DNA of 64,000 bases, from contig NZ_JMCB01000003.1 in assembly GCF_000737315.1 (NCBI RefSeq), positions 1,054,001 through 1,118,000 of the forward strand. Reading direction: 5' to 3'. The position numbers and the translations under genes were made by a program. Below the pieces are notes generated by a model that ran no database searches, was not told the origin of the DNA, and saw only the letters and a program-made list of their open reading frames with translations. Shown piece by piece: positions 2,538 to 62,098 of this stretch (position 1 is its first letter; every line of letters begins with the position of its first letter). The stretch comes from Hyalangium minutum (lineage in GTDB: Bacteria; Myxococcota; Myxococcia; Myxococcales; Myxococcaceae).

Positions 2538-2727
2538 GACAATCTCCTCTGGCGAAGCAATGGCGGGAGATGCTTATCAGCGAACAGTTCCCGGACGGAA
2601 GGGACGAGAGCCGCTAAAACCTATGTTACTCCGCGTGTGCCTCTCCCCCCCAGAGACGTTGCCTCATCATCATGATCGGCGTTCCTTCGTGCAGTGATGT
2701 CGGTTCCCTCCTCCGCCGGCGAGGCGG

Positions 2728-6222
<3,495 letters not shown>

Positions 6223-34262: not shown

Positions 34263-34463
34263 CGGTTTGTGGGGATGAGGCACGGCGTACCTCCTGGAGG
34301 AGGCGGTCATCGTACCTGGGGGAAAAGAAGCGACAAGAATCCAGGCTCTGAGCCAGAACACGCCTGTTCGTCGGAGAGCCTCTGTCATCTGGAACGGCTC
34401 CGCCTGCCGGCGTGAGGACCTAGGAGGTTCTGTGTCCTTACCCTACCCCTCACCTCCTCGCTC

Positions 34464-34793
34464 TCAGGGAAGCAACTGGATGTCGTCGACGTAGAGCGAG
34501 CCCTGGTCTCCGCCCGACTGGTCCTGGAGGTAGAACTCCCGAAGCGTGCCAGTGCTCACACCGAGGGCGCTGAACGGGATGACGATCCGCTGCCAGGTGC
34601 CCGGAGTGATGGCGTGGCCCAGGGCGCCACGTCCAGACGGCGCTCTCCGAGCACATTCGAGCCATCGGTGAGCAGCACTCGCGCGATCTGCCCGCCGTTA
34701 CGGATGCCCTCGGTGCCAAGGTAGTAGGTCGCGGGGATGCCGCGTGCGTTGAGCGCCGGGCGCGCCGCAGTGAACTGCGAGGGCCAGCCGTCA
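34464..34793 (-). pseudogene. Collapsed remnant: polysaccharide deacetylase N-terminus joined to a carbohydrate-binding-module C-terminus, with frameshift
   Basis: DGWPSQFTAARPALNARGIPATYYL, then after a 1-nt shift LGHAITPGTWQRIVIPFSALG...QDQSGGDQGSLYVDDIQLLP-stop. Confidence 0.6.
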
Positions 34794-34816
34794 CTCCTTG
34801 AGCTCCGCAGCAGGGG

Positions 34817-35650
34817 TCATCGCACGATAGCGGTCTCCGTGATCATCTTGGCGATCCATTGCATGTAGTAATGCGTGCTCGTATACGTTGACGTCCCTCC
34901 GATGCTCACACTCGAGAGGATACCCACGAGCTGATTCTCACGAAAGCAACCTCCCCCGCTATCGCCACATGCTGCTAAAGCTTGACTCTGATCGGAGATT
35001 TGAAACACCTGTCCACCTTCTCCCGTATCAGAGACCGTATTGTTGCCGAAGCGGCGGGTTGGAACGGTGTCCCGATAGGCGCACTGCCCCTTGCCATCGA
35101 CCTGATCCACACCGAAACCCGTGACAGTGATGCTGGCGCCTGGGCTAACTCCGCCTGGATACAGTGAAGCGGAGGAAATGGCCTGTGCCACCGCTTGAGT
35201 AAGCCGAATCACTGCCAGATCCGCATTCGCTGATACAATCTTCTCCTGGCCATCCATCACCCTGAGCACGATCTTGAAATCGGGGTGAGGCAGCACATCG
35301 CCCTCGTACGCCTTGAAATCGCCTGGCTTGTTTGGCTCCGAGGAAGAGTAGACCGCCGTTTGAATGAAGGCCCGCTTCAAACAGGACTTGAGGTCTCTGA
35401 TCTTCGCGTCTCTATCCCAGCGGGCATTTCTGCACACACAGTGAGCTGCAGTCAGGATCAGCCTTGGATGGAGCAGCACTCCACTGCAGTACGGTCTGTT
35501 GTCCCCGTTTTTCGTGAGCGCAACCACCGATGAGTACGTGTTGCTGGCATCCCAGATACCGGGTGGCAGAACTGCAAGAACTTCGTCGCGCCGGGTTCGC
35601 GGAGCAGCCGCAGGTTGCTGCGTGGCACAACCACCGCACACGCTCACCAT
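34817..35650 (-). CDS. Trypsin-like (S1) serine protease, probable lipoprotein; likely true start 35698 interrupted by TGA at codon 5
   Basis: YCSGVLLHPRLILTAAHC, ADLAVI, CGDSGGGC (complete His-Asp-Ser triad). Confidence 0.85.
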   Translation of the reverse strand: MVSVCGGCATQQPAAAPRTRRDEVLAVLPPGIWDASNTYSSVVALTKNGDNRPYCSGVLLHPRLILTAAHCVCRNARWDRDAKIRDLKSCLKRAFIQTAVYSSSEPNKPGDFKAYEGDVLPHPDFKIVLRVMDGQEKIVSANADLAVIRLTQAVAQAISSASLYPGGVSPGASITVTGFGVDQVDGKGQCAYRDTVPTRRFGNNTVSDTGEGGQVFQISDQSQALAACGDSGGGCFRENQLVGILSSVSIGGTSTYTSTHYYMQWIAKMITETAIVR

Positions 35651-35713
35651 CAGGGCCGTCCATAGCCACCGCGCAGGCCAAACTCAAGGGATTGCCATGT
35701 GATCCTCGCAGCA

Positions 35714-36703
35714 TTACTTCATGCCACCGTCCATGCGCGGTGGGATGGTGATTGACTTCTGGATTTGAACGTTGAGCCACTCGCGATACAGGTGGACGCT
35801 CGTGCATCCCGGCATAGGCCCTGCCCCCTTACCGGATAAGCCGACGAGAGACATCCCCGTCTTGTCTTGGCGCAAGCACAGTTCTCCACTGCCCATGGTC
35901 AACGGTTCGCCATGCGGGGCAAGCACCATTTCATCAGCACCTCCAGCGGGGAGTCTTTTGACTTCCTTTTGGCCTGAACGCCTGACCCCATGAATGAAAT
36001 CGGTAGCCGCATCAAGACCGTATCCCGCGACACGGATGACTTCCCCCAATTTGACCTCAGAGTCCGCGAGGCGAACGGACATGGACGGATCTTCCACGGG
36101 GCTGTCCAAAAGAGCAACGGCGAGATCCGCATGACTGGAGAGGACAAGCGGCTGGGCATCCAAGAGGATTTTCAAAGCAGGGTGGACGCTCACCTGGGCG
36201 CGATACGTCTGGGCTCGAAATCCTGGAGGACCGTCGGAGCTTTCCGCTCGCGGAAAATAGGTGATCGTTGTCACCTCCATCTCTTCCGCACACGCCACCC
36301 CATCAATCACAAGCTGGGCATCACTTCCTGGCTCCACGAGTGAATGCCGCGGGCACACACAATGGCCAGCGGTCAGGACCACTCTTGGGCTGATAAGCAC
36401 GCCAGTGCACTTGAATGTTTCCCCTCCGTTCACAGAGGCCGCCACCATGGTGGCAAATGCGAATTGATTCTCCAGGTCCTCCACGCCATCGGAGAGGTCA
36501 ATCCGATCGTCAACAGGCAACACCTCACCCTCACGCAAGTTGGGCGATGAGGCATTCCCTCCATCCACACCGGATGGGCCTGCCCCTGCATCGGCGGCAA
36601 GTCTGGAGGCGGTGGAGCGCGAGGCGCATCTGCCGTAGGCGAAAAGCCCTCCCACGCAGAGAGTTGCGAACACAATCGCCTTCCAAGTTCCGCGCATGCC
36701 CAT
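35714..36703 (-). CDS. Trypsin-like protease homologue with degenerate Ser motif and N-terminal membrane anchor
   Basis: CTGVLISPRVVLTAGHC and ADLAVA present; GDSGG replaced by MGSGE. Confidence 0.8.
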   Translation of the reverse strand: MGMRGTWKAIVFATLCVGGLFAYGRCASRSTASRLAADAGAGPSGVDGGNASSPNLREGEVLPVDDRIDLSDGVEDLENQFAFATMVAASVNGGETFKCTGVLISPRVVLTAGHCVCPRHSLVEPGSDAQLVIDGVACAEEMEVTTITYFPRAESSDGPPGFRAQTYRAQVSVHPALKILLDAQPLVLSSHADLAVALLDSPVEDPSMSVRLADSEVKLGEVIRVAGYGLDAATDFIHGVRRSGQKEVKRLPAGGADEMVLAPHGEPLTMGSGELCLRQDKTGMSLVGLSGKGAGPMPGCTSVHLYREWLNVQIQKSITIPPRMDGGMK

Positions 36704-36707
36704 GGCT

Positions 36708-37472
36708 TCAGCTTTCTTCCCGAGACACCACGTCCCGCGAGAAGGACTCCCCGGGCACCTGCACGGCATGGAGCTGCTCGCGCAGCGAGCCCAACAGCTC
36801 AGGCGGATCTCCCTGGCGGAAAGCGGCGAGCCCGGCCTCGAAGTCGGCGCGCGCTCCTGCGGTGTCCCCCTGCCGGGCGCGCAGCACTCCTCGGTCCCGT
36901 AGCAGCTCTGGGTCCACCGGCTCGTCCTGATACGTGGCCAGCGCGTCGGTGAGATCCTGGATGGCCTCCGTCAGCTTTCCGAGCTGGGCCCGTGCCTGGG
37001 CGCGCTGCTGCAGGAGCCACGGGTTCCCCGGATCCTCGTCCAGCGCCTGCGTCCAGTCGCGCTCAGCCTCGGCGTGGCGACCAAGTGCTCGCAGGGACTC
37101 GGCGCGCTTCGCGTAGAGGATGACCAGCTTGCGGTGTCCCACGGCCTCCACCGTGTTGAAGTCGGCCACCGCCTCCTCGTGTCGGCCCACCCTTGCGAGC
37201 GTCAGGGCCCGGTGCAGCCGCGTGGTGAGGTGCCCCGGCGCCAGATCCAGGACACGGTCGAACCACTGGAGCGCCTCGGCGGGAGCACGACCCCAGACGG
37301 CGAGCGTCAGCCCCGCCTCCAGCAGCACTCGCACCTGTGTGGGGTGGGCCTCGGCCAGTTCCCGGATCCGCGCCAGCGCTTGCTCATAGCGCCCGGTGCG
37401 CCGCAGGCGATCCACCTCGCGCAGCGGCGCCCCCAGCTCCGGCAGCCACCGTGTGCGTCCCTTGTGCTCCAT
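36708..37472 (-). CDS. Tetratricopeptide repeat protein
   Basis: Multiple RA......G....A..D...AL...P helical repeats. Confidence 0.88.
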   Translation of the reverse strand: MEHKGRTRWLPELGAPLREVDRLRRTGRYEQALARIRELAEAHPTQVRVLLEAGLTLAVWGRAPAEALQWFDRVLDLAPGHLTTRLHRALTLARVGRHEEAVADFNTVEAVGHRKLVILYAKRAESLRALGRHAEAERDWTQALDEDPGNPWLLQQRAQARAQLGKLTEAIQDLTDALATYQDEPVDPELLRDRGVLRARQGDTAGARADFEAGLAAFRQGDPPELLGSLREQLHAVQVPGESFSRDVVSREES

Positions 37473-48231: not shown

Positions 48232-50229
48232 ATGAAGCATCCCGCCTCGCCGCGTGTCGTCGCTCTCGTCGGTCCTCAGGGAGCAGGCAAGACGACCTTG
48301 CTGGAGTCGCTGCTGCGAGTCACTGGAGCCGGTCCCCTGCGAGCCACCGGAGGCAATGGCACGGCGAGCGGGCGTACGATGACGATGGAGCTGGCGGCGG
48401 CCACCACGGACTTCCTGGGGGAGCGCTGGACGTTCATTGACTGCCCAGGGGCTCCTGAGTTCTCGCTGGAAGCCCGTCACGCGCTGATGGTCTGCGACGC
48501 GGCGCTGGTGGTGTGCGATACCGGCCCGGATCGCGCGGCCGCCCTGTCGCCGCTGTTTCACTTCCTCGATACGCGCCACATTCCCCACCTGCTCTTCCTC
48601 AACGCGCTGGATCAGAGCGGCGCGTCGGTGCGCGGACTGCTCGACTCGCTGCAAGCCGTCTCCTCGCGCCCGCTGGTGCTGCGAGAGATCCCCTTGCGCG
48701 AGGGGGAGCGCATGGTGGGCGTGGTGGATCTCGTGAGCGAGCGGGCCTGGGGCATGACGGGCGAGCGGGAGGCCGCGCTCATCCCCCTGCCGGAGACGGA
48801 CCGGCCCTTGGAGGAGGCCGCGCGGCGGCAGATGCTCGAGCGGCTGGCGGATCAGGATGACGCGCTGCTGGAGCAACTCATCGAGGACGTCGTGCCTCCG
48901 CCGGGAGTCCTCTACGAGCAGTTGGCGCGGGCGCTGCGAGAGGACCGGCTGGTGCCCGTCTTCATCGGGTCGGCCGAGCGAGGGCTGGGCCTGTTGCGGC
49001 TGCTGAAAGGCCTGCGCCACGAAGTGCCCGCCGTCGAGGAGACGCGCACGCGCCTGGGGATCTCCACCCAGGGGGGCCCCCTGGTGCAGCCCTTCAAGAC
49101 GCGCCATCTGCCTCACGTGGGCAAGCAGTCACTGGCTCGCATCTGGCGAGGCACGGTGACGGATGGGGGCACCCTCGGCGGAGGACGCGTGAGCGGCGTG
49201 TTCCAGCCACATGGAGCGCGGCAGGAGGCGGTCCGCACGGCCCACGAGGGAGAGGTGGCGATCATCGGCCGGCTGGACGCGGCGCGAACGGGAGAGCGAG
49301 TGGAGCAGGACGAGGTCCGCCGCATCACCGGCTGGCCCGCAGCGTCCCCGCCCGTGCACCAGGTGGCGATCACCGCGCAGAAGCGCACAGACGACGTGAA
49401 GCTGCCTGGCGCGCTGGCCCGGCTGGTGGAGGAAGATCCCTCGCTCTCCGTGGACCAGGATCCCGACACGCAGCAGTTGCTGCTCGGAGGCCAGGGCGAG
49501 CTGCACGTGCGAGAGGCGATCGAGCGGCTGGGCGCACACCTGCGGGTGCCGGTGGTGATGCACCCCGTGCCCATTCCCTACCGGGAGACCATCCGGCGGC
49601 ACGGCGGGCACCACGCGCGCTACAAGCGCCAGTCGGGGGGCCATGGCCAGTTCGGTGACGTGGTGGTGGGGGTGCGGCCCCTGCCGCGCGGACAGGGCTT
49701 CAACTTCACCTCGGCAGTGGTGGGCGGTGCGGTGCCCCGGCAGTACATCCCCGCCGTCGAAGAGGGCGTGTTCCAGGGGCTACACCGAGGACCACTGGGC
49801 TTCCCCGTGGTGGACGTGGCCGTCACCTTGATGGGAGGCACCTACCACTCGGTGGACAGCTCCGATCAGGCCTTCCGCACGGCCGCGCGCCTGGCCATGG
49901 CGGAGATCCTGCCGAGGCTGGAGCCGGTGCTTCTGGAGCCCATCCTCCACGTGGAGCTCCACGTGCCGCGAGACGCGATACCTCGGGCCCAGCGGCTCAT
50001 CACCGGCCGACGAGGCCAACTGCTGGGCTTCGATGCGAACCTGGATCTGCCGGGCTGGGACATCCTCACGGCCTACCTGCCGCAGGCGGAGCTGAAGGGG
50101 CTCATCGTGGAGTTGCGCTCGGCATCGGCCGGCTTGGGCACCTTCGTGGCGCGGCACGACCACTACTCCGAGCTGATGGGCCGTCAGGCGGAGCGCGTGG
50201 TGAGCCACCAGCCCGTGGCGGAGCCATGA
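48232..50229 (+). CDS. Elongation factor G-like protein (divergent paralogue)
   Basis: GPQGAGKTT, DCPG, EEDPSL, GQGELH, PYRETI, KRQSGGHGQFGDV, YHSVDSSDQAF, LLEPI. Confidence 0.92.
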   Translation: MKHPASPRVVALVGPQGAGKTTLLESLLRVTGAGPLRATGGNGTASGRTMTMELAAATTDFLGERWTFIDCPGAPEFSLEARHALMVCDAALVVCDTGPDRAAALSPLFHFLDTRHIPHLLFLNALDQSGASVRGLLDSLQAVSSRPLVLREIPLREGERMVGVVDLVSERAWGMTGEREAALIPLPETDRPLEEAARRQMLERLADQDDALLEQLIEDVVPPPGVLYEQLARALREDRLVPVFIGSAERGLGLLRLLKGLRHEVPAVEETRTRLGISTQGGPLVQPFKTRHLPHVGKQSLARIWRGTVTDGGTLGGGRVSGVFQPHGARQEAVRTAHEGEVAIIGRLDAARTGERVEQDEVRRITGWPAASPPVHQVAITAQKRTDDVKLPGALARLVEEDPSLSVDQDPDTQQLLLGGQGELHVREAIERLGAHLRVPVVMHPVPIPYRETIRRHGGHHARYKRQSGGHGQFGDVVVGVRPLPRGQGFNFTSAVVGGAVPRQYIPAVEEGVFQGLHRGPLGFPVVDVAVTLMGGTYHSVDSSDQAFRTAARLAMAEILPRLEPVLLEPILHVELHVPRDAIPRAQRLITGRRGQLLGFDANLDLPGWDILTAYLPQAELKGLIVELRSASAGLGTFVARHDHYSELMGRQAERVVSHQPVAEP

Positions 50230-50378
50230 GCCGCGTGCGCGCGGCCTTCGATCCCGAAGTGCTCCTCTCGGTCGACCAGCTGTAGCTCAGGCGGCACCTG
50301 CCACATTCCAATACCGCCGACGATCCAGGGAGCGCCCAGGGATGACCGGCTGGAACCTGGATGCTAGGTTGCGCCGCC

Positions 50379-50648
50379 GTGCCACGCGTCACCTTTACCT
50401 CCAGCATCCAGCGCCATGTGTCCTGCCCCTCCGAGATGGTAACGGGGAAGACCGTGCGCGAGGCCCTCGAGCAGTACTTCGCCCGCCATCCTCAGGCACG
50501 GGGCTACGTGCTCGATGAACAGGGGGCGATGCGCCAGCACGTCGTCATCTTCGTCAACGGCGGCCAGATCCGCGATCGCGCGGCCCAACAGGATCCCATC
50601 AGCGAGTCCGCCGAGCTCTACGTCATGCAGGCACTCTCAGGGGGGTAA
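50379..50648 (+). CDS. MoaD/ThiS-family ubiquitin-like protein
   Basis: Beta-grasp pattern G.TVREAL...P....VLDEQG..RQHV.IFVNG; C-terminal LSGG. Confidence 0.9.
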   Translation: MPRVTFTSSIQRHVSCPSEMVTGKTVREALEQYFARHPQARGYVLDEQGAMRQHVVIFVNGGQIRDRAAQQDPISESAELYVMQALSGG

Positions 50649-50650
50649 CC

Positions 50651-51745
50651 ATGTCCGACCGCATCTTCGCCGCCACACGCAAGGGGCTCTTCGAGCTCCG
50701 CCGCACGCAGGGCCGCTGGCACATCGTCAACACCTCGTTCCTCGGGGACTCCGTCTCGCTGATGGGCAAGAACCCCGCGGATGGCACCCTCTACGCTGCA
50801 CTGTTCCTGGGCCACTTCGGCGTGAAGCTGCGAGCCTCCACCGACGGAGGCCAGCGCTGGGAAGAGCTGGCGGCCCCGGCCTTCCCGACGATTCCCGAGG
50901 GCGTCGTGGACACCCTGCCGGATGGCAAGCCGTGGCCCTGGCGCGTCGAGCAGATCTGGGCCTTCGAGGCCGTGGAGGACACGCTCTGGGTCGGCACGAT
51001 CGGCGGAGGACTCTTCCGCTCGAATGATCGTGGCCGCTCGTGGGAGCTGGTGCGCGGCCTCTGGGAGCACCCGCAGCGCAAGCAGTGGTTCGGCGGTGGC
51101 GCGGATCTGCCGGGCATCCACTCCATCTGCCCCCACCCGAAGAACCCAAACGAGCTCCTCGTCGGTGTCTCGTGTGGCGGTGTCTGGCGCACCCGCGATC
51201 GCGGCGAGAAGTGGGAGGTCGCCAGCCAGGGAATGTTCGCCGAGTACATGCCTCCCGAGCGGCGCGAGGATCCCTCCATTCAGGATCCGCACATGGTCGC
51301 GCGCAGCCCCTCACACCCGGATCGCCTCTGGGTGCAGCACCACAACGGCGTCTTCCGCTCCGATGATGGCGGCAACCGGTGGCACACCATCCACGAGAGC
51401 GCCCCGAGCGTCTTCGGGTTCGCCATTGCGGTCCACCCTACGGAGCCGGACACCGCCTGGCGAGTCCCCGCCATCAAGGACGAGCACCGCGTCCCCGTCG
51501 ATGGCCGCGTCGTCGTCTCCCGCACGCGCGATGCGGGCAAGACCTGGGAGGTGCTGCGCGAGGGCCTGCCCCAGGAGCACGCGTACGATCTCACCCTGCG
51601 CCATGCGCTCGACGTGGACGCCACGGGAGACCGGCTCGCGTTTGGCAGCACCACGGGCTCGCTCTGGGTCTCCGAGAACCAGGGGGACTCGTGGACGCAC
51701 ATCTCCGCGCACCTTCCCCCCATCTACGCGGTGCGCTTCGCCTGA
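50651..51745 (+). CDS. BNR/Asp-box repeat beta-propeller protein (sialidase-like fold)
   Basis: Repeated S.D.G..W boxes (STDGGQRW, SNDRGRSW, TRDRGEKW, SDDGGNRW, TRDAGKTW, SENQGDSW). Confidence 0.9.
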   Translation: MSDRIFAATRKGLFELRRTQGRWHIVNTSFLGDSVSLMGKNPADGTLYAALFLGHFGVKLRASTDGGQRWEELAAPAFPTIPEGVVDTLPDGKPWPWRVEQIWAFEAVEDTLWVGTIGGGLFRSNDRGRSWELVRGLWEHPQRKQWFGGGADLPGIHSICPHPKNPNELLVGVSCGGVWRTRDRGEKWEVASQGMFAEYMPPERREDPSIQDPHMVARSPSHPDRLWVQHHNGVFRSDDGGNRWHTIHESAPSVFGFAIAVHPTEPDTAWRVPAIKDEHRVPVDGRVVVSRTRDAGKTWEVLREGLPQEHAYDLTLRHALDVDATGDRLAFGSTTGSLWVSENQGDSWTHISAHLPPIYAVRFA

Positions 51746-51760
51746 GCTAGCCTTGAGCGG

Positions 51761-52501
51761 GTGAACGCCCGTCCTGATCCGGAGTTCCGCCCGCTCGGAG
51801 GCAAGGCCTACGGCTCCATCCCCCACCTGCCGGGCTCGCGCACGGGCCCGGCGGATCGGCACCTCTCGCCCACCCACGCGCGCATCTGCACCGAGCGTCC
51901 GCGCGATGCCCACGATCACGTGGTGGTGCTCGAGAAGCTGGACGGCTCCTGTGTGGCCGCCGCGCGCCTGGGGGACGCGATCGTGGCGCTGGGCCGAGAG
52001 GGCCGCCTCGCCGCGCACTCCCCCAACGAGGCCCGGCGGCTCTGGGCGGCCTGGGTTGCGCAACACTCGAAGCGCTTCCTCGCCACCCTCCAGCCCGGCG
52101 AGCGCCTCGTGGGCGAGTGGCTGGCCCTGGCGCATGGGACCCGCTATGCGCTGCGTCACGAGCCCTTCGTCGCCTTCGACCTCCTGAACGGCAACGAGCG
52201 ACGCCCCTGGCATGAGGTGCGAGCCCGGGTGAGCGTTGGGGGCTTCGTCACCCCGGGCCTCATCCACGAGGGTGGGCCGCTGAGCATCGACGCGGTGATG
52301 GCGCGCCTCCAGGGTGGCGGCTTCCATGGGGCGATCGATGCCGTCGAAGGAGCCGTCTGGCGCGTGGAGCGGCGCATCGAGGGTGCCGAGCGCGTGGACT
52401 TCCTCGCCAAGTACGTGCGGCCGGACAAGGTGGACGGCAGCCTATTGCCCGAAAACACCCACCTGCCCGCCGTCTGGAACTGGCGCCCGGAGCCGTCATG
52501 A
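51761..52501 (+). CDS. RNA ligase family protein (stand-alone nucleotidyltransferase domain)
   Basis: Motif I EKLDGS, III GEW, IIIa FVAFD, IV EGAVW, V LAKYVR. Confidence 0.85.
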   Translation: MNARPDPEFRPLGGKAYGSIPHLPGSRTGPADRHLSPTHARICTERPRDAHDHVVVLEKLDGSCVAAARLGDAIVALGREGRLAAHSPNEARRLWAAWVAQHSKRFLATLQPGERLVGEWLALAHGTRYALRHEPFVAFDLLNGNERRPWHEVRARVSVGGFVTPGLIHEGGPLSIDAVMARLQGGGFHGAIDAVEGAVWRVERRIEGAERVDFLAKYVRPDKVDGSLLPENTHLPAVWNWRPEPS

Positions 52502-53712
52502 GCCGCGAGGAGAGCTCCATGCCACGCGCGTTCTTCGTCACAGGCAACCAGTACAAAGCCGAGGAAGTCGCTCGGCTGCTCTCGGGCATCGACGTGGTCT
52601 GGCGCAAGCTCGCCCTCCCGGGGCACGAGCCCGCAGACGACGCGCAAGGCCCCATCGACCTGGGTGCCCTAGCGAAGCGCAAGGTGCTGGCGGCGTACCA
52701 AGTACTCGGCGCGCCATGCTTCGTGGAGACCACGGCGCTCGAGTTGGACAGCGGGGTCACACTCACGGGAGCCCGCTTCAAGAAACAGTGGCTCGCGCAA
52801 GGCGAGCGCGCGTTCCTGGACACCCATGGCGGCAACCGGGGCCGTGCGCGGGTGGCCGTGGCGTTCTCGGAGAATGGCCATCCGGGTCACGTGGCCCTCT
52901 TCGAGGGCTCCATGGCGGGCACGCTGCTCACGGAGCCTCGGGGCGAGGGCGGCTACGGCTGGGATCGCGCCTGGCTGCCGGATGGGTACGAGCGCACGCT
53001 CGGAGAGATGGCGCAGCACAAGTTCTTCCTCAACATGCGCCACAGGCCGTACCTCGAGCTGGCGGATCGACTCCGGGAGCAATCGGCGGGCGGGGCCTAC
53101 GAGGCGCACGTGACGATCGCGGCGCGCTCGGAGGACGAGTTCCAGCGCTTCCGTGCTTTCTGCGGCGCGGCGGGGGTGAAGTGCATCTTCATCGAGCTGG
53201 GCCAAGGCGAGGCGCGCTTCCAGCCCATGACTGCCTCCTACCACCACGGTCCGCTGAAGCAGGCGCAGGAGGAGGTACAGGCCTTCGCACGCGCGCTGGC
53301 GGTGGAGGGCTTCGACGTGACCCGCCTGAAGATCGAGGCGCTGGGCGCCAACAAGGACATTCCGAGCGATGACGCAACAGCCCGGGCCCAGCCCGCGAAC
53401 TACTTCGAGTTCCACGTCAAGGTGACGCTGCCCGCGGAGGGGGCGGACGTGGAGGCACTGCGGGCGCGGTGCGAGCGGTACGGTGCGCACCTGTCGCGGA
53501 ACGCGCGCAAAGTGCGGGCGGATGGGGGCGCCGAGCGCTTCGTCACGTTGCGAGTGAAAGGACTGGGCCGGGCGAACGCGGAGGCACGCTTCTCGGCGGT
53601 GCTGCGGGATCTGGCAGAGACGGGCCTGCCCCTCTCCTACCCGCTGCGCGAGTACACGGTGTACGACTCGAACCACGCACTCGATCGAGGCTGGGGCGAG
53701 GTGCGGTCATGA
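52498..53712 (+). CDS. HAM1/ITPase-like NTP pyrophosphatase domain fused to an uncharacterised C-terminal domain
   Basis: FVTGNQYKAEE, FEG...G.....RGEGGYGWD...P.GY..T.GEM; C-terminal half with YEAHVT, YFEFHVKV, HLSRNA, EYTVYDSN...D.GW; ATGA overlap with ligase. Confidence 0.85.
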   Translation: MSREESSMPRAFFVTGNQYKAEEVARLLSGIDVVWRKLALPGHEPADDAQGPIDLGALAKRKVLAAYQVLGAPCFVETTALELDSGVTLTGARFKKQWLAQGERAFLDTHGGNRGRARVAVAFSENGHPGHVALFEGSMAGTLLTEPRGEGGYGWDRAWLPDGYERTLGEMAQHKFFLNMRHRPYLELADRLREQSAGGAYEAHVTIAARSEDEFQRFRAFCGAAGVKCIFIELGQGEARFQPMTASYHHGPLKQAQEEVQAFARALAVEGFDVTRLKIEALGANKDIPSDDATARAQPANYFEFHVKVTLPAEGADVEALRARCERYGAHLSRNARKVRADGGAERFVTLRVKGLGRANAEARFSAVLRDLAETGLPLSYPLREYTVYDSNHALDRGWGEVRS

Positions 53713-54533
53713 GCCCCCCACCCGTCCTCCGGGCGGCCACGGGGCTCTTGCGGCGCCTCTCTCACTCGCCCGAGGCGGAGCAGCTCGTCCTGCGGGGCGG
53801 GATGATGATGCGCCTGTGGTCCGGTCCGGTACCTCGGCCGGTGGAGGACATCGACTTCCTGGCTCTCTTCCCCTTCGACCCGGCGGCGACCGCCGCAAGG
53901 CTGGAGTCCGTCTGCCACGTCGAGGCGGGCGATGGGCTCCGCTTCGGCACGCTCCGCTCCGAGGTGATCTGGGCGGAGACGAACTTCCCCGGCGTACGAG
54001 CCTTCGTGGATGTGACGCAGCCCGGAGGCGAAGCGCCTTTCGAGCTGCGGATCGACACGGGCTTCGGCGATCCGATGGATCCGCCCCCGACCTGGATAGA
54101 GCCAGCCTTGGAGGAAGGGCCCCCGGCCCGGGTCCTCGCCTGTCGGCCGGAAACTCTGTTCGCATGGAAGGTCCACGGCCTCTTCGAGCGGGGCAAGGGC
54201 CGCTTCCGCCCAAAGGATCTCTTCGACGTCTACCTGCTGGCGAAGCACTCGCCGCTCGCTCCAGCGCTGCTGCCCCGGGCACTCCGGCTCGCGTTCGACT
54301 CGCGGGGTGACTCGCTCGATCTCACCTCGCGGCTCATCTCGGGCGAGTTCGGCCGGAGCCCCTGGAGCATGGAGAAGTGGGCACGCTTCAGGCAGAGCCT
54401 GCCGGAGGGGCGCCCGGAGCAGCTCGCCGAAGTGGTGGCCTCGGTCGCGGCGGTGCTCGGTCCGGTGGTGGCAGCGGCCCGTGAGCTTCCACCGGCCGCA
54501 CGCCCACCCCCTGTCCACCCTCCTCCTCAGTGA
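53709..54533 (+). CDS. AbiEii/AbiGii (DUF1814)-family nucleotidyltransferase
   Basis: LRGG.......R..EDIDF, RIDTGFGDP, ETLFAWK, R.KDLFD; ATGA overlap with the upstream gene. Confidence 0.85.
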   Translation: MSPPPVLRAATGLLRRLSHSPEAEQLVLRGGMMMRLWSGPVPRPVEDIDFLALFPFDPAATAARLESVCHVEAGDGLRFGTLRSEVIWAETNFPGVRAFVDVTQPGGEAPFELRIDTGFGDPMDPPPTWIEPALEEGPPARVLACRPETLFAWKVHGLFERGKGRFRPKDLFDVYLLAKHSPLAPALLPRALRLAFDSRGDSLDLTSRLISGEFGRSPWSMEKWARFRQSLPEGRPEQLAEVVASVAAVLGPVVAAARELPPAARPPPVHPPPQ

Positions 54534-56110
54534 TCTCCGGTGTGGCCGTGGGACTGAGTGTGCGGCACGACCTCGAGCACTTCGGCCATTCCCAGGTCCC
54601 CATGCTCGGCGATGTGGCAGTGCATCATGAACTGGCCGAGGTAGCGAACGTAGCGAGTGCGCAGCTTGACGGTCTGCCCGCTGCGAACAATCACCGTGTC
54701 CTTCCAGAGGATCTTCCCGTCCTCGGTCGTCAGCTGGAACGGATTCACGTGGATGTGGAAGGGATGGTTGAAGTTCTGGGACGTCACGCTCCACTCCTCC
54801 ACCGCGTCCAGCATCAGCTTGCGCACCGCGTGGGGATCGAATTCCTTGCCATTGATCAGGAACCGCGGCGGCGTCACCGAGAGGTCGATGCTGAAGACGA
54901 CCTGCTGCTGCCCGGTGATCTCAGCGTCCTGGATGGGCTTGAACGGAGCGAGCGGCGCCAACTCCTGAGCCGTGGGGAGGCGCATCCTCTTCAGCTTGCC
55001 CTTCGCCACCACCACCCGAGCCAGGGTGTGCCCCGGTGCGGGAGCTGGCATGTTCTCGTCCACGAGGAAGTATGTCCCCGGCGGCAGCGGAGTCCCATTC
55101 ACCTCCGCCGCACGCACCATCACGTCCACGCGGTAGCCGGGATGCATCTCCGTCTCCGTCACCGCGTCGATCCGGCCGGTGGTGATGCCGTCATGCGCGA
55201 TCTGGAACTGCGTCAGGGGGAACTCCTGATTCCCCTGGCGACGAACCAGCCGGAGCTTGAGCATCTCCCGAAGGCCGCCGTGGATGAACCGCCAGCGCTG
55301 CACCTCACCAGGGAACAGCGTGTAGGTGGGCTCGACTTCTCCATTCAGCGTGAAGCGCCGCCCCTGGGTCGGCCACAGTCCATTCCTGAGCTGGTCATAG
55401 TTCTCCACCATGAAGGCCTGGTGCCCCGGCATCGTGGGATCATCCATCAGCTCATAAGGGATCTGCTGGAAGAGGATGATCCGTTCCTTGGCGGCGCGGA
55501 TGGCGGGCACCCTGTCGATGTCGCCTCGGATGATCAGTGGGCCGGCCATGCCGCTGGCAAGCTGGAGCGTCGCTGAGCCATGCTTGTGCGCGTGGTACCA
55601 GTAGGTGCCCGCGGGATGGTCCAGGGGGATCTTCACCTCGTACTCGAATCGATGGCCTGGAGTCAGGGCCAGCATCACGTTGTCCGCGTTCCCCGAGGGC
55701 GACACGTGCAGTCCGTGGAAGTGAAGATTCGTGGTGTTGAAGCCGTGAGGCTCGGTGCTCGGGTGCTCCATGCCATCGAGGGGCGGCGGCTCGGGAGGGA
55801 GCTGGTTCTCCAGGGTGATGTTGAGCGTGTCCCCGGGAATGGCCTCGATGAGCGGGCCGTGCAGCTTGCCGTTGTAGGAGCGCAGCTTGACCTGGTCCCA
55901 GGCGGTGCACCCTCCGTCCTGAACGCTCCGGCAGATCCGGTGCGTGGCATACCGGAGTTTCAGGTGGATGAAGAGATCGCGAGGAGAGCGCTGGCGCTTG
56001 CCACCGCGCTGATGCGCCTCCTCATGCGCGTCCTCATCATGACGGTCATGCTTCAGGAACCGTTGGTTCCGCTCGACGACTTCGCCCGGGGTCGCTGCTT
56101 CATAGGCCAT
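54527..56110 (-). CDS. Multicopper oxidase
   Basis: NLHFHG, YWYHAH, HPFHIH, HCHIAEHGDLGM copper motifs. Confidence 0.93.
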   Translation of the reverse strand: MAYEAATPGEVVERNQRFLKHDRHDEDAHEEAHQRGGKRQRSPRDLFIHLKLRYATHRICRSVQDGGCTAWDQVKLRSYNGKLHGPLIEAIPGDTLNITLENQLPPEPPPLDGMEHPSTEPHGFNTTNLHFHGLHVSPSGNADNVMLALTPGHRFEYEVKIPLDHPAGTYWYHAHKHGSATLQLASGMAGPLIIRGDIDRVPAIRAAKERIILFQQIPYELMDDPTMPGHQAFMVENYDQLRNGLWPTQGRRFTLNGEVEPTYTLFPGEVQRWRFIHGGLREMLKLRLVRRQGNQEFPLTQFQIAHDGITTGRIDAVTETEMHPGYRVDVMVRAAEVNGTPLPPGTYFLVDENMPAPAPGHTLARVVVAKGKLKRMRLPTAQELAPLAPFKPIQDAEITGQQQVVFSIDLSVTPPRFLINGKEFDPHAVRKLMLDAVEEWSVTSQNFNHPFHIHVNPFQLTTEDGKILWKDTVIVRSGQTVKLRTRYVRYLGQFMMHCHIAEHGDLGMAEVLEVVPHTQSHGHTGDH

Positions 56111-56235
56111 GGTTCTGCTCCTGAGCTCGGGACAGGCCACGGTGACCCGCCCTCAACAGGAGCAGAGTGAGTCCCTGCTCCATGTGACCTACGTGTTCCG
56201 GAAGGAGTCCTGCCCGGCTGTTCTCCAGGCAGACG

Positions 56236-57778: not shown

Positions 57779-58528
57779 TCACCGTTGAAGTTGTCTAGGG
57801 AGGACGATCAAGTCCTCGAGCTCGACCGCAGGCAGCCCAGCCGCCTCCGCAATCGCGAAGTGCTCCGGCGCGTGATAGCCCCAGACGGCCCAGTGCGCCC
57901 GGAACCCAGCGCCGAGGGCGTCCTTGGCATTCAACACGTTGTCGTCGAAGAACCAGACGTCATCGGGAGAAACAGCAAAGGATTCGCTGATCGCCCTCAG
58001 CACGCGCACCTTGTCCCTGCACTCGCCGTGGATCCGCTCATCCGGGAGACGCAGGCCGGCGTGTTGCAACAACTCCTGGACCGAGCCGCTGTCCTTGGCG
58101 GTGACGATGCACACCGGCAACAGGGAGGTCCGCAGCATGTACTCCAGCCCCGGGTAGAACTGGTGGTAGGCCAGCCAGCGAGCGCGGAAGGCTTGCCGCG
58201 CGGCGCCCCGGTACTCGGTGACGCGGCCAACGAAGCGCTCGACCTGGCGTGGATCCAGGGCTCCGTAGGCCGCGTCGAACTCCGCCTGGCTCTCGAAGAA
58301 GCCCGCGTCGCTCTGGAAGGGCATGAAGAAATGCCCCAGGTGCTTGGTGAAGCTGCGGTGGTTCTTGAACCTCTCGATGAAGCTCGAGGGAATCTGGGCA
58401 AGGCCCTCATCGCTGAAGTGCTCGAGGCTCTTGCTGTAGTGGGCGTTCCAGCTCACCAGAACGCACTCGTTGAGACCATCGACCAGCAGTCCATCGAAGT
58501 CCAATGCCAGGACTTTCTTGGGGCGCAT
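57779..58528 (-). CDS. HAD-superfamily hydrolase
   Basis: ALDFDG (motif I), VTAK (II), K (III), FFDD (IV), WGY. Confidence 0.85.
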   Translation of the reverse strand: MRPKKVLALDFDGLLVDGLNECVLVSWNAHYSKSLEHFSDEGLAQIPSSFIERFKNHRSFTKHLGHFFMPFQSDAGFFESQAEFDAAYGALDPRQVERFVGRVTEYRGAARQAFRARWLAYHQFYPGLEYMLRTSLLPVCIVTAKDSGSVQELLQHAGLRLPDERIHGECRDKVRVLRAISESFAVSPDDVWFFDDNVLNAKDALGAGFRAHWAVWGYHAPEHFAIAEAAGLPAVELEDLIVLPRQLQR

Positions 58529-58549
58529 GTGGGGCCTTCCCTTTCAAGC

Positions 58550-59116
58550 TCACGCAGCAATGGTGGACGAGGACGGATTCCGGGCCGCGTTGGCCTCGAC
58601 CGCCGCGAACACAGCCCTCATGAACTTGCCCACGTACCCGTAGTAGGAGCAGGTGATGATGTTGCCGTCGACAATGACTTCCGCGTCGACCACATCGGCG
58701 CCGCTGTTGATCATGTCATCGACGATGCCAACGTACGAGCACACCTTCCGGCCCTTGAGCACCTTCGCGGAGATCATGATCCACGGGCCGTGACACAGCC
58801 CCGCGACGATCTTCCCCGCCTCATCCATCGCCTTGACGAAGGCCAGCACCGTCTTGTCCTGGCGGACCCGCTCCGGGGCTTCATGGCCGCCAGTGAGGAT
58901 GACCACGTCGTAGCGATCTACGGACAGGGCCGAGAACGGCATGTTGGGCTTGGCCGTCTTGTCCATGGGCAGCGGGACGTTGTACTTGCCAATGACAGGC
59001 TTGCCCTCCTTGGTGGCGATGTCGACGTTGTAGCCCTCCTCCTTCAGGCGGTAGTAGGTGTAGACGACGTCGTGATCCTGGAAGCCGGGGCCGGTGATGA
59101 TGACAGCGTTGAACAT
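58550..59116 (-). CDS. DJ-1/PfpI family protein
   Basis: GFQD, YDVVILTGG, AGLCHGPW nucleophile Cys, VIVDGNIIT. Confidence 0.9.
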   Translation of the reverse strand: MFNAVIITGPGFQDHDVVYTYYRLKEEGYNVDIATKEGKPVIGKYNVPLPMDKTAKPNMPFSALSVDRYDVVILTGGHEAPERVRQDKTVLAFVKAMDEAGKIVAGLCHGPWIMISAKVLKGRKVCSYVGIVDDMINSGADVVDAEVIVDGNIITCSYYGYVGKFMRAVFAAVEANAARNPSSSTIAA

Positions 59117-59165
59117 GGTGGTGCTCCTGTTTGATGGTGGGTTGAGGTGGTGACTGCGGCACGTG

Positions 59166-59942
59166 TCAGATGCGGGTGATCGCCAGATAGCGCTCGATGG
59201 ACTCGAGTTGAGAGAACCGGGCCTCACTGCTCTTGAAGATGGCAACCCTCTGCCCGAGGGCCCCAGCAGCCGACAGTGACACCGCGAAGTCGGGAAGCCG
59301 CCGGCTGTGCTTGATCCGAAGGCCGGTCAGGACATCGAACCGGAACAAGCCTTGGAGATCCTGCTCGCGGATCTTGGAGTAAGGCTGGGTGGGGTCCTCG
59401 AGCAAAGGGGCAATGTCCTGGGCGCTATTTCTGGACTCATACTGCTGGCCTTGCCGCCCATAGCGGTCTTGCTTGCGGATCAGGTCGAACTTGTTTCTCG
59501 GTGTTTCCACTTCGACCAAATGGGCTTCCCAGGGCCCCACGTTGTCGGTGGAGTGGAACACGCCCTTGGGGATGCGTGCGTATTGGCCCGTCTCGACGCG
59601 GATGGAGTGGCTCAGGAAGTTGATCTGCAGGCTCCCGCCCAAGCACATCAGCACGGTCTCCTTGCGGGGATGACAATGCATGGACGTGGATTGACGAGGA
59701 GCCAGCATCAGCTTCCACACATCGATCAACATGTCGGCATAAACTCTGTGTTCATACCCCCATGGCTTCTCGATGAGGGCGTCGAGATAGGCGTCCTTGG
59801 TGAAATCCTCGAAGCGGATGAGCTGTCCGCCCGCGAGCTCCTCGGAGAATGCAAAGACATCCTCCGCTGACACCTCGGACACATCAAAAGCAGTTCGCGT
59901 CCCCCTACCCTCGTCGTGTAGTTCCTGGTTCAGCTCCTGCAT
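59166..59942 (-). CDS. Cupin domain protein (sugar-phosphate isomerase-like)
   Basis: KPWG, STSMHCHPRKET, IPKGVFHS, EVETP...DL.R..DRYGR; AGGAG RBS. Confidence 0.85.
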   Translation of the reverse strand: MQELNQELHDEGRGTRTAFDVSEVSAEDVFAFSEELAGGQLIRFEDFTKDAYLDALIEKPWGYEHRVYADMLIDVWKLMLAPRQSTSMHCHPRKETVLMCLGGSLQINFLSHSIRVETGQYARIPKGVFHSTDNVGPWEAHLVEVETPRNKFDLIRKQDRYGRQGQQYESRNSAQDIAPLLEDPTQPYSKIREQDLQGLFRFDVLTGLRIKHSRRLPDFAVSLSAAGALGQRVAIFKSSEARFSQLESIERYLAITRI

Positions 59943-60124
59943 GGGTTTGGCTCCTGTCCAATTCCGCTGCCATTTCTATGGAGCCGCGTGCGGAACGTTG
60001 TGACGGACAGGTTGGATGTTCGTTGAGAGCAGCCGGGCGTGGAGACCACAGGACTGAGGTCGTCACATTGCCCACGAGCCCACTCTCTACGAAGGAGTCC
60101 CGCGAGGGATGCCACGAAAGGGGC

Positions 60125-60223
60125 AGCTTCGCGGTGCGGGATGGCCGGCTGGTGACGGGGCAGAACCCCGCCTCGTCCGTCGCCGCCGCGCGCGAGGTGC
60201 TCACCGCCCTTCAGGAGCGCTGA
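60125..60223 (+). pseudogene. C-terminal remnant of an Hsp31/ThiJ-type (class I glutamine amidotransferase-like) gene
   Basis: SFAVRDGRLVTGQNPASSVAAAREVL-stop matches the C-terminus of that family; no upstream body. Confidence 0.65.
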
Positions 60224-60245
60224 CGATTCAAATCAATCGCCCGGA

Positions 60246-60285
60246 GGAAGGGCAGGCAGGGGACCTGGACATCGCCTGCCTTTCC
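60246..60285. terminator. Possible bidirectional hairpin between convergent units
   Basis: GGAAGGGCAGGC...GCCTGCCTTTCC (12-bp stem, one G-T pair). Confidence 0.4.
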
Positions 60286-60352
60286 GCCAAGCCACCCCTC
60301 AGGAGGAGCAACCCATGGCTCGAATGATGTTCATCGTGCGGCGTGAGCGAGC

Positions 60353-62098
60353 TCACTTCTGGGCGGGAGGGGGGGAAGCAGCAGCCTCCCCCGGAGTCTC
60401 CACTTTGAAGCCCGCGCGCTCCAGCATGCTCCGCATCTCATTGCGTGCCACGGATTTGTTGAGCGCCTCGGTCGGGACCACCAGCTTCTTCTTGACCAGC
60501 TCCAGCAGCGCGTCGTTGAGCATCATCATTCCTGCCCCGCGCCCGGTCTGCATCACCGAGGGGATCTGGAATGTCTTGCCCTCGCGGATCAGGTTCGACA
60601 CCGAGCTGGTGCACAGCAGCACCTCTTGGGCCGCCACGCGCCCACCGCCAATTTTCTTGCACAGCGTCTGCGAGATGACGCCCTTGAGTGACTCGGACAA
60701 CATCATGCGAATCTGCGACTGACGGTCCGCTGGAAACTGGTCGATGATGCGGTCCACCGTGGAGGCCGCCGTGTTCGTGTGCAGCGTCCCGAACACCAAG
60801 TGCCCCGTCTCCGCCGTCTCGATGGCGATGGCGATGGTCTCCAGGTCTCGCATTTCACCCACCAGCACCACGTCCGGATCCTCGCGAAGCGCCGCGCGCA
60901 GCGCGTCCTTGAAGGAGTCCGTGTGGACGCCGATCTCCCGCTGGTTCACCAAGCACTTCTTGTTCGGGTGAACGAACTCGATGGGGTCCTCGATGGTGAT
61001 GATGTGATCCTCGCGGAACCGGTTGATGTAGTCGACCATCGACGCCAGCGTGGTCGACTTGCCCGAGCCCGTGGGGCCGGTGACGAGCACCAGCCCCTTC
61101 GTGAGGAAACACAAGTCCAGGATCTGCTTGGACAGGCCCATCTCCTCCGCGCTGCGGATGGTGTTGGGGATCTGCCGCATCACAGAGCCAATGCCCTTCC
61201 GATCCGCGAAGACGTTGACGCGGAAGCGCGCGGCCGGCAGCTCATAGGCAAAGTCGGTATCGCGCTTCTTCTCCCACTGCTCCTTGTTCTTGTTGGGAGC
61301 AATGCTGAAAACCATCGCCTTGAGGCGCGCGGAAGTCAGCGGGCCGTACTCCGGCAGCGGCACCATGTCGCCATCGATGCGCATGTGCGGCACCGTATCG
61401 CTGGACATATGGAGGTCCGAGGCCCGGCGGGCCAGCATCGTCTCCAAGAGGGAATTCATCTGCGCCCTCGCCTCGTCCTGTTCCTGGTCTCCCTCGACCA
61501 GGCCCAAGGAGACAGCGGGGGCGGGAGCAGGCGGGGGGGGATCCGGAGGCGGAGGAGCCGCCGGCGCCGCCGCCGGCGCCGGGACGCTGGAGGCCCCCTG
61601 CGAGGAGAGCACCGGAATGGCCGGCTGCGAATTGCGGCCTGTGGCAGCGGAGCGAGGCGCCACTACGGGCGCCGAAGGAGCGGCAGGAGCGGCAGGAGCA
61701 AGCGTGGGACGCGTGCTGGGCGCGCTCGGCGCGGGCGCCACCGGGGCGAGCTGGAGATTGTCCTCCTCCAGATCGATCGTGCCGTACATGGCATGGGGGG
61801 CGAAGGGCACCATCGACACCCGGGCACGGTCCTTCTCCAGCTCGAACTTCACCTGCACCGCGCCCGCAGGCGAGGAATAGGGAAACAGGGTGATCCCCCC
61901 GGCCGGAAAGGACGCGCGCTGATCCGAAGGTACCAGTTCCGCGACCGCCCCGATGATCTGCTGGGTCGTGAGCTGTTGCTTCAGGACTGGCAGCAGCCCG
62001 GTCGTGGTGCGAATGCTCACACCATTGCCGGTCTCCATGACGATTTCCAGACCAGAGTCCTTGAGCAACTTTTCGATGATGTAATCAATTCTGGCCAT
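60353..62098 (-). CDS. pilT: PilT/PilU family type IV pilus ATPase with N-terminal extension
   Basis: ASDLH, GPTGSGKSTTL, TIEDPIEF, ALREDPDV.LVGEMRD, ETGHLVFGTLH; AIRNLIRE-like VSNLIRE. Confidence 0.92.
   Translation of the reverse strand: MARIDYIIEKLLKDSGLEIVMETGNGVSIRTTTGLLPVLKQQLTTQQIIGAVAELVPSDQRASFPAGGITLFPYSSPAGAVQVKFELEKDRARVSMVPFAPHAMYGTIDLEEDNLQLAPVAPAPSAPSTRPTLAPAAPAAPSAPVVAPRSAATGRNSQPAIPVLSSQGASSVPAPAAAPAAPPPPDPPPPAPAPAVSLGLVEGDQEQDEARAQMNSLLETMLARRASDLHMSSDTVPHMRIDGDMVPLPEYGPLTSARLKAMVFSIAPNKNKEQWEKKRDTDFAYELPAARFRVNVFADRKGIGSVMRQIPNTIRSAEEMGLSKQILDLCFLTKGLVLVTGPTGSGKSTTLASMVDYINRFREDHIITIEDPIEFVHPNKKCLVNQREIGVHTDSFKDALRAALREDPDVVLVGEMRDLETIAIAIETAETGHLVFGTLHTNTAASTVDRIIDQFPADRQSQIRMMLSESLKGVISQTLCKKIGGGRVAAQEVLLCTSSVSNLIREGKTFQIPSVMQTGRGAGMMMLNDALLELVKKKLVVPTEALNKSVARNEMRSMLERAGFKVETPGEAAASPPPAQK

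Follow-up and report, generated by a model that had tools for sequence, protein, structure and literature searches.

A 64,000-nucleotide stretch of the Hyalangium minutum genome (contig NZ_JMCB01000003.1, positions 1,054,001 to 1,118,000; here called the window) carries three overlapping genes on its forward strand that code for an RNA ligase, a HAM1 fusion protein and an AbiEii-like nucleotidyltransferase (NTase). The first open reading frame (ORF), ORF1 (51761-52501, + strand), starts with GTG and codes for a minimal ATP-dependent RNA-ligase-family protein of 246 residues. ORF2 (52498-53712, + strand) codes for a 404-residue protein in which a HAM1/ITPase-like domain (residues 1-195; 52498..53082) is followed by an undescribed domain, which we call the C-terminal domain or CTD (residues ~196-404; 53083..53712). 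ORF3 (53709-54533, + strand), 274 residues long from an ATG at 53709, is the AbiEii/DUF1814 NTase; a longer alternative with a GTG start, from 53469, was also listed, but the start was taken as 53709 because homologues support it. An earlier reading made from the letters of the DNA alone (the sequence-only reading) had described the three genes as joined by consecutive ATGA stop/start overlaps and had assigned them to these same families. The overlaps lie at exactly 52498-52501 (ORF1/ORF2) and 53709-53712 (ORF2/ORF3), and the family calls were borne out by Pfam. The same -4 overlap joins the first two genes in at least 12 other loci, and the last two in about 17 other loci and on a Deinococcus plasmid. 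The G+C content of the operon, about 0.70, equals that of its flanks.

Judged by its motifs and its Pfam score, ORF1 fits the ATP-dependent RNA ligases of the covalent nucleotidyltransferase superfamily. It matches Pfam RNA_ligase (PF09414) at 1.3e-15, with 58 bits against a gathering cut-off of 27, and consists of the nucleotidyltransferase domain alone. K59 lies in the motif EKLDG (residues 58-62), which is followed by EW at 119-120, EGxVWRxE at 196-203 and KxVRxxK at 217-223; in 38 orthologues, conservation of motifs I (KxDG), III, IV and V reaches at least 95% (K59/D61/G62, E119, E196/G197, K217/K223). The protein has no signature extra domain of the characterized subfamilies Rnl1-Rnl5, and single-sequence and profile searches of the PDB returned no close solved structure, only weak motif-I matches to Rnl3/Rnl5 enzymes (E 0.006-0.2). 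The family counts more than 3700 homologues, phage-borne ones included, and ORF1 itself matches phrog_38169; members stand alone in chromosomes, on a phage-like contig and in Flavobacterium phages. Ligases of the ORF1 type, 37-58% identical to ORF1, were seen on a phage-like metagenomic contig with a DnaG-MCM primase-helicase and many small ORFs (L072/L073, 5001-5735), and in Flavobacterium psychrophilum phages (H1-H7), all annotated as hypothetical proteins.

ORF3 matches Pfam AbiEii (PF08843) at 3.1e-33 and the PADLOC AbiEii model PDLC02319 at 3.8e-98. Its catalytic motifs are intact (RGG at 31-32, D47-I-D49, DTGFGD and KDLFD), and the corresponding G[GS], DxD, DxGxGD and KDxxD motifs are conserved over about 60 NTase orthologues. 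The characterized DUF1814 enzymes act on tRNA. In several of these toxins, a Ser or Thr two residues before the DxD motif (AbiEii T65, MenT1 T39, MenT3 S78) undergoes auto-phosphorylation induced by the antitoxin (bioRxiv 10.64898/2026.01.19.700257). Alignment of ORF3 with the structure of Streptococcus agalactiae AbiEii (9hlo_B) placed a Val at this phospho-acceptor position; the residue is V, A, P or C in nearly all of the orthologues and Thr in one locus alone (L061).

The N-terminal half of ORF2 matches Pfam Ham1p_like over residues 12-174 (4.8e-18), and no further Pfam family was found in ORF2 at E up to 0.1. This half does not pass for a housekeeping HAM1/RdgB/ITPase enzyme, either by its catalytic Asp or by its equivalog score: its best NCBIfam score is 45 bits, against RdgB/HAM1 equivalog cut-offs of 145-272. 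Its fold matches ITPA and KomB, and its best sequence match in the PDB is KomB (8zsg, 5e-16), a component of the Kongming system that binds dITP and does not hydrolyse it (bioRxiv 10.1101/2024.12.20.629578). The position of the catalytic Asp (residue 78; ITPA D72, RdgB D69) is occupied by His65 in KomB and by Thr in the window. Across 32 aligned HAM1 sequences residue 78 was N in 19, T in 6, A in 3 and another residue in the others, with the catalytic Asp in none (0/32) and His in one, the KomB reference itself. The second Mg-binding acidic region is variable, while the substrate-binding residues T15, N17, E77, T79, W155-D156 and R181 are invariant or nearly so in the same 32 sequences, and the SHR motif reads N-M-R in the HAM1 half and S-M-R in KomB. 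The sequence-only reading had the HAM1 domain sensing or removing an unusual nucleotide. With the catalytic Asp absent from all of the sequences, as in the non-hydrolysing KomB, sensing or binding of a nucleotide is likelier than hydrolysis, and the HAM1 half probably binds its ligand without cleaving it. The likeness to KomB thus includes the HAM1 fold, the lost Asp, the retained nucleotide-binding residues and the change of SHR to xMR. It has limits, however: defensive HAM1 proteins were reported to have an invariant His at the catalytic position and to pair with SIR2 (bioRxiv 10.1101/2024.12.20.629578), whereas the HAM1 domain described here has N, T or A, is fused to the CTD and is linked to an NTase and a ligase. 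Neither SIR2 (KomC) nor adenosine deaminase (KomA) was found among the module genes of any locus. In relatives belonging to Archangium and Myxococcus, the HAM1 domain has been deleted in-frame (P0067, P0078, P0111; L012, L014, L015, L029, L037), so that the CTD is preceded by a remnant of about 15 N-terminal residues ('FVTGNQYKA'), with the ligase and the NTase retained. Since close relatives have lost the domain in this way, we regard HAM1 as accessory.

The CTD is an undescribed domain, with no Pfam family and no close match in the PDB. Its AlphaFold (AF2) model has a mean predicted local distance difference test (pLDDT) score of 90.4 and shows two ferredoxin-like beta-alpha-beta-beta-alpha-beta repeats. 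Neither a profile search of the PDB nor Pfam scans of 26 members gave anything above noise. With Foldseek, the PDB yielded matches with template-modelling (TM) scores below 0.4, to tandem ACT and chlorite-dismutase-like folds, and BFVD yielded stronger ones (TM 0.6-0.86), to proteins that are uncharacterized and come from Aeromonas phage LAh_8, from Sinorhizobium phage phiM12 and from the giant viruses Klosneuvirus, Fadolivirus, Yasminevirus and Bodo saltans virus. When 1.84 billion cluster representatives were searched with a profile, 2312 members were gathered. The conserved polar residues of the domain are E202-x-H204-x-T206, QPMT (242-245), R276-x-K278-x-E280, YFE-x-H306, LSxN (332-335), T350-x-R352, E385...D390 and D396-x-x-W399; they alternate along the strands and are retained in phage, algal and fusion versions. 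This pattern suggests that the domain has an active or ligand-binding site to itself, beyond a mere toxin-binding surface. The retention of the polar residues in stand-alone phage versions points to an autonomous enzyme or ligand-binding module, and so does the conservation of the domain, which at about 45-55% identity to the cyanobacterial versions exceeds that of the NTase (33-43%). Two assignments were considered and set aside. A 2H phosphoesterase is matched by the first motif, HVT, but the second reads HVK and varies in phages, and no 2H protein was among the top Foldseek matches. The likeness to a CYTH/TTM tunnel or an ACT sensor is a weak topological similarity that allows no conclusion, because the TM scores are below 0.4.

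The sequence-only reading had noted that no antitoxin-like helix-turn-helix (HTH) gene is visible and had named the finding of an AbiEi-type partner as a sign against its proposal. An AbiEi protein with an HTH is indeed missing, and the CTD has neither an HTH nor a winged helix, being tandem ferredoxin-like instead. The CTD is, however, the conserved upstream partner of the NTase, and it matches the PADLOC "AbiEi" model PDLC02277 at 1e-63. A partner in the sense of that model, which is association-based, therefore lies inside ORF2, but it has none of the usual AbiEi domains. A PADLOC search, which had also been proposed, matched both ORF2 and ORF3 as AbiE and gave no defence-island signal in the 126 flanking ORFs scanned, where the matches were scattered and generic (TnpB, a methyltransferase, a Ser/Thr kinase and a sigma-54 activator).

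When one genome per GTDB species was scanned, and the parts were counted by a hidden Markov model (HMM) census together with a tblastn pass, 70 loci were obtained. All four domains (ligase, HAM1, CTD and NTase) were present in 27 of these and the CTD and NTase only in another 27; 7 loci had ligase, CTD and NTase, 6 had HAM1, CTD and NTase, and 3 were degenerate. The NTase lies directly downstream of the CTD in 67/70 loci, in Myxococcota, Cyanobacteria and Planctomycetes. On the strength of this census we consider the CTD-NTase pair to be the core. Its hosts are Myxococcota, Cyanobacteria (Rivularia, Calothrix, Scytonema, Mastigocoleus) and Gemmata-type Planctomycetes, and it is also carried on Deinococcus and Streptomyces plasmids; the distribution is patchy and mostly non-syntenic. 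The 43 Myxococcota-type loci, 35 of which have the ligase, include every case of a ligase or a HAM1 domain among the 70. The gene order, often with the 4-bp overlaps, recurs in dozens of Myxococcota genomes, with identities of ORF2 down to about 45%. Most often the ligase gene is upstream and co-directional; it is downstream in one locus (L070), and on the Deinococcus plasmid NZ_CP097157 an ORF1-type ligase is divergent from CTD-AbiEii. Most likely, the CTD and the DUF1814 NTase are an ancient core, which in Myxococcota gained a minimal RNA ligase and, fused N-terminally to the CTD, a dead HAM1 domain.

Pfam scans of CTD-family proteins identified fusions that join every pair of module domains. 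An RNA ligase is fused to a CTD in P0382, and a CTD to AbiEii in P0441, P0479 and P0444; in P0424 a metallo-beta-lactamase domain (tRNase Z/Apyc1-like, with HxHxDH intact) precedes the CTD and is followed by an overlapping AbiEii gene. Two proteins, P0449 (1398 residues) and P0485 (1030 residues), have AbiEii, HAM1, CTD and a T4 Rnl1-like ligase in one polypeptide. P0485 is XP_005786036 of Emiliania huxleyi, and a related protein occurs in Prymnesium, both haptophyte algae. As the ligase of the algal proteins is of a different family, it is ligation as a function, and not one particular gene, that appears to have been retained.

CTD homologues also occur without the other parts of the module, in jumbo phages and giant viruses, where no NTase adjoins them; the giant viruses with this fold are rich in translation genes. 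In 4 of the 5 phage contexts examined, the CTD-only gene is near RNA-repair or tRNA genes. That of phiM12 (gp254) is flanked by an Rnl1 RNA ligase and a CCA-adding enzyme, and that of RP13 is among tRNA genes. In the Xanthomonas phage XacN1, ORF257 (the CTD) is three genes from ORF260 (L076, 1587-2237), which is annotated as a "2'-5' RNA ligase" but is probably a misannotated Rnl2-type ligase, because it matches phrog_24030 (RNA ligase, 5e-63) and the ORF1-family HMM (6e-9). In LAh_9 the neighbourhood includes TROVE-like (DUF2828) and band-7 genes. In PHROGs v4, the CTD corresponds to positions 247-441 of phrog_1247, labelled "MazG-like pyrophosphatase", which hints that some members are MazG-CTD fusions, with MazG as a possible third kind of nucleotide-hydrolase domain joined to the CTD, or else that the label is misleading.

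Because the gene order and the overlaps recur across Myxococcota, the arrangement is not due to chance. We conclude that the three genes, with their four domains, form one real RNA-end-handling unit. The sequence-only reading had proposed such a functional unit acting on nucleotides or RNA ends, and the neighbourhood check that it had called for, which was run, upheld it: the parts co-occur far beyond close relatives, and several combinations of them are fused.

How the unit works is less certain. We tentatively favour, at somewhat less than even confidence, an RNA-end extend-and-seal machine for repair or processing. The NTase would add one or a few nucleotides, untemplated, to an RNA 3'-OH, with tRNA the likeliest substrate, as for its characterized relatives, and the ligase would join the extended 3'-OH to a 5'-phosphate. 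The CTD would be an obligatory partner, which either gates the NTase or deals with the RNA end by recognizing or preparing it, possibly through the conserved His/Glu/Lys/Arg/Thr site between its two beta-sheets. The HAM1 half may bind a purine (d)NTP without hydrolysing it, for the selection of a nucleotide or as an on/off signal. The substrates, the order of the reactions and a reparative rather than toxic outcome are what we infer from the following observations. The linkage to a ligase is repeated in several independent arrangements and in fusions, one of them with a different ligase family; all four domains are fused in a eukaryote; and the CTD is conserved alone in viruses, in most of the phage contexts examined near RNA-repair or tRNA genes. 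Other observations argue against a strict toxin/antitoxin relation between the CTD and the NTase, namely the missing phospho-acceptor, the lack of a defence-island signal in the flanks, the intact NTase beside a truncated CTD in L056, and a symmetric pattern of gene decay (CTD broken and NTase intact in 3 loci, the reverse in 3), in counts that are small and in which some breaks may be assembly errors.

Operons for RNA repair offer a parallel to such a machine. Like those with RlaP or CCA-adding enzymes, or with T4 Pnkp/Rnl1, the module places a ligase, a template-independent NTase and a third protein in one operon, in keeping with the "syntax" described for RNA repair, and genes for Rnl1 or Rnl2-type ligases and for a CCA-adding enzyme lie close to its phage CTD homologues. 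For RlaP NTases, pairing with an RNA ligase is already predicted to let nucleotides that were lost be replaced ahead of ligation (PMC7824862). The module differs in that its NTase is of the DUF1814 family, and not RlaP or a class II CCA enzyme, and in that its third component is uncharacterized. No 5'-kinase and no recognizable 3'-phosphatase was found in the module; the site in the CTD is enzyme-like but of no recognized family. In U-insertion (uridine-insertion) editing in kinetoplastids, carried out by a terminal uridylyltransferase (TUTase) and the REL1 ligase, which belongs to the same Pfam family as ORF1 (PF09414), a 3'-OH is likewise extended by an NTase and sealed by an Rnl2-type ligase; the NTases are non-homologous, however, and the module has no guide RNA and no editosome, so that the analogy is purely mechanistic.

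Several points weigh against extend-and-seal. The characterized close relatives of the NTase (AbiEii, MenT1/3/4) are all growth-arresting toxins that block tRNA charging. The order of the genes, with a partner upstream and a coupled NTase downstream, is like that of AbiE/MenAT, and both genes fall under PADLOC models for AbiE. The dead HAM1 domain has its greatest similarity to KomB, which is a sensor in defence, and one variant locus (L083) is surrounded by defence-like genes. Ligation is not essential to the core, because 27 loci have the core without a ligase, and a classical heal-and-seal pathway would be incomplete unless the CTD supplied an activity, because neither a 5'-kinase nor a 3'-phosphatase is recognizable. 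The small decay counts, too, limit what can be drawn from them. In its boldest form, the proposal would make the CTD a new enzyme fold, and the four domains an unrecognized extend-and-seal pathway common to bacteria and haptophyte algae, with the CTD alone in jumbo phages and giant viruses; we consider this form less likely than not, although it has a real chance. Possibly, such a pathway would restore nucleotides lost from cleaved tRNAs before their religation, with HAM1 selecting or sensing a purine nucleotide.

The main competitor, to which we give somewhat less weight, is a toxin-antitoxin or abortive-infection system of the AbiE kind into which a nucleotide sensor is built. The chemistry, extension of a 3' end by the NTase, is the same as in the extend-and-seal proposal, and the two differ in outcome and regulation. 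Here the NTase would be a toxin that extends tRNA 3' ends, and the CTD would serve as its antitoxin, a non-canonical one that may itself be an enzyme. On sensing a non-canonical purine (d)NTP that arises in the course of phage infection, the dead HAM1 domain would free the toxin, and the ligase would be an accessory co-effector (for example, one that makes the damage irreversible) or a recovery factor. The family of the NTase, its intact catalytic motifs and the toxicity of all its characterized relatives speak for this. So do the likenesses to AbiE/MenAT, that is, a downstream DUF1814/AbiEii NTase with G[GS], DxD and KDxxD, a partner immediately upstream that is translationally coupled to it, and PADLOC AbiE models that match both genes. 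The HAM1 domain, which lacks the Asp but keeps its binding residues and has the change from SHR to xMR in common with KomB, would suit a sensor. The N-terminal domain of the partner appears swappable or dispensable, as it has been deleted in-frame in some loci and is replaced by an Apyc1-like metallo-beta-lactamase in P0424, and, to judge from the PHROG label, phages may have MazG-like fusions. The patchy distribution that includes plasmids, the neighbours of L083 and the stand-alone two-gene cassettes in cyanobacteria are also as might be expected of a defence system.

Set against this, the partner differs from that of AbiE/MenAT in having no winged helix, no COG5340 domain and no Pfam AbiEi family, and the NTase differs in having no phospho-acceptor Ser/Thr. 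The RNA ligase, which in such a system has no obvious role, is nevertheless linked to the module repeatedly and once by fusion with the CTD; and fusion of the four domains in a eukaryotic alga is not a feature of AbiE/MenAT. Of all the parts the CTD is conserved best, and its conservation extends to viruses in which no NTase adjoins it. Loci with a broken CTD beside an intact NTase exist, the flanking ORFs show no enrichment in defence genes, and neither hallmark of the defensive HAM1 proteins, the His at the catalytic position or the pairing with SIR2, holds here. At a conserved position in Rivulariaceae (L044, L045, L048, L049, L051-L053, L057, L065), the CTD-NTase pair, with a gap of 100-200 bp between the two genes, adjoins two membrane ORFs of about 320 residues that are ctaB- and ctaA-like by eye. 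This conserved position suggests vertical inheritance, which would be unusual for a toxin-antitoxin cassette.

Improbable is the mechanism that the sequence-only reading had put forward, if it is taken to mean that the NTase, with no antitoxin beside it, marks an RNA end for the ligase to reseal or activate and that a still active HAM1 enzyme removes an unusual nucleotide. The three families were named correctly and their linkage is genuine, but a conserved partner domain fills the position of the antitoxin inside ORF2, and the HAM1 domain has neither the catalytic Asp (0/32) nor a constant second Mg-binding region, and it failed every RdgB/HAM1 equivalog cut-off. We give as little weight to an action elsewhere than at RNA ends. 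The module might act on DNA ends, like bacterial LigD, in which a ligase, a polymerase and a 3'-phosphoesterase likewise combine three activities (heal, fill and seal) in one polypeptide or operon, and a ligase with an end-extending NTase and a putative phosphoesterase-like barrel would parallel this; LigD, however, acts on DNA ends with unrelated domains, so that it serves as an analogy only. Alternatively, a nucleotide signal might be both made and read, with the ligase-type adenylyltransferase producing a dinucleoside polyphosphate that the HAM1/CTD part binds, as the recurrence of the CTD beside nucleotide-hydrolase-type domains (HAM1, metallo-beta-lactamase and possibly MazG) could suggest. 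ORF1, however, matches RNA-ligase and not DNA-ligase families in Pfam and PHROG, the ligase and core occur without HAM1 and HAM1 without the ligase, and the characterized DUF1814 enzymes act on tRNA. That the three genes are mere neighbours with unrelated functions is scarcely credible, in spite of the ordinary metabolic genes around them and of the mere 15 bp to the gene upstream, as their order and overlaps are conserved across a phylum, and it is already refuted because Rosetta-stone fusions link every pair of domains.

In the literature searched, we found no description of the three-gene combination, as the sequence-only reading had supposed, nor of the ligase/HAM1 linkage or the algal four-domain protein; Burroughs & Aravind 2016 was outside the scope of this search. 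The CTD-NTase pair itself can already be named "AbiE" by PADLOC, and it is the partner domain, the linkage to the ligase and HAM1 and the algal protein that are new within that literature. AbiE-type systems are among the most abundant defence or toxin-antitoxin systems reported, and to our knowledge their NTases have so far been known only as tRNA-poisoning toxins. A clade of these NTases that is stably wired to an RNA ligase would mean either that the same chemistry can serve repair or that two enzymes together damage RNA in a new way. The CTD has neither a Pfam family nor a solved structure, but bacteria, algae, jumbo phages and giant viruses together supply about 2300 cluster representatives of it, and this makes it a good target in the search for a new activity. 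The idea behind Kongming, that non-canonical purine nucleotides serve as signals, would be carried over by the dead HAM1 domain to a second, unrelated effector.

The surroundings of the module vary. In the window, its neighbours are ordinary metabolic genes. Directly 5' of the ligase gene and on the same strand (50361-51745) are a ThiS/MoaD-like ORF (95 residues) and a BNR/Asp-box beta-propeller ORF (364 residues), with gaps of 3 and 15 bp, the latter separating the ligase gene from its upstream neighbour; neither ORF was linked to the module in other genomes. Synteny of the flanks with the window was found in L056 only, whose flanks are about 79-83% identical to the window in DNA sequence. 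In that locus about 4 kb of other DNA (1952-6000) replaces window positions 50225-53403, that is, the ThiS, BNR, ligase and HAM1 sequences and the first repeat of the CTD, so that the breakpoint falls inside the CTD and the NTase ORF is intact. Upstream of ligase-less loci in Polyangia/Kofleriaceae, we noted genes for an ATP-grasp R2K_3 protein and an arylamine N-acetyltransferase (L013, 4052-5763) and for a patatin-like phospholipase (L017, 4611-5987). Promoter and terminator scans around the operon were uninformative, and no tRNA gene or Rfam family was found in the whole 64-kb window. Downstream, a convergent ORF of 537 residues (54527-56140, - strand), multicopper oxidase-like by eye, overlaps the stop of ORF3 by 7 bp, with no terminator-like site between the two. 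Farther from the module, the G+C content dips to about 0.61 at window positions ~34000-37000 and ~58000-61000, against a background of 0.65-0.71, and these two regions could be islands.

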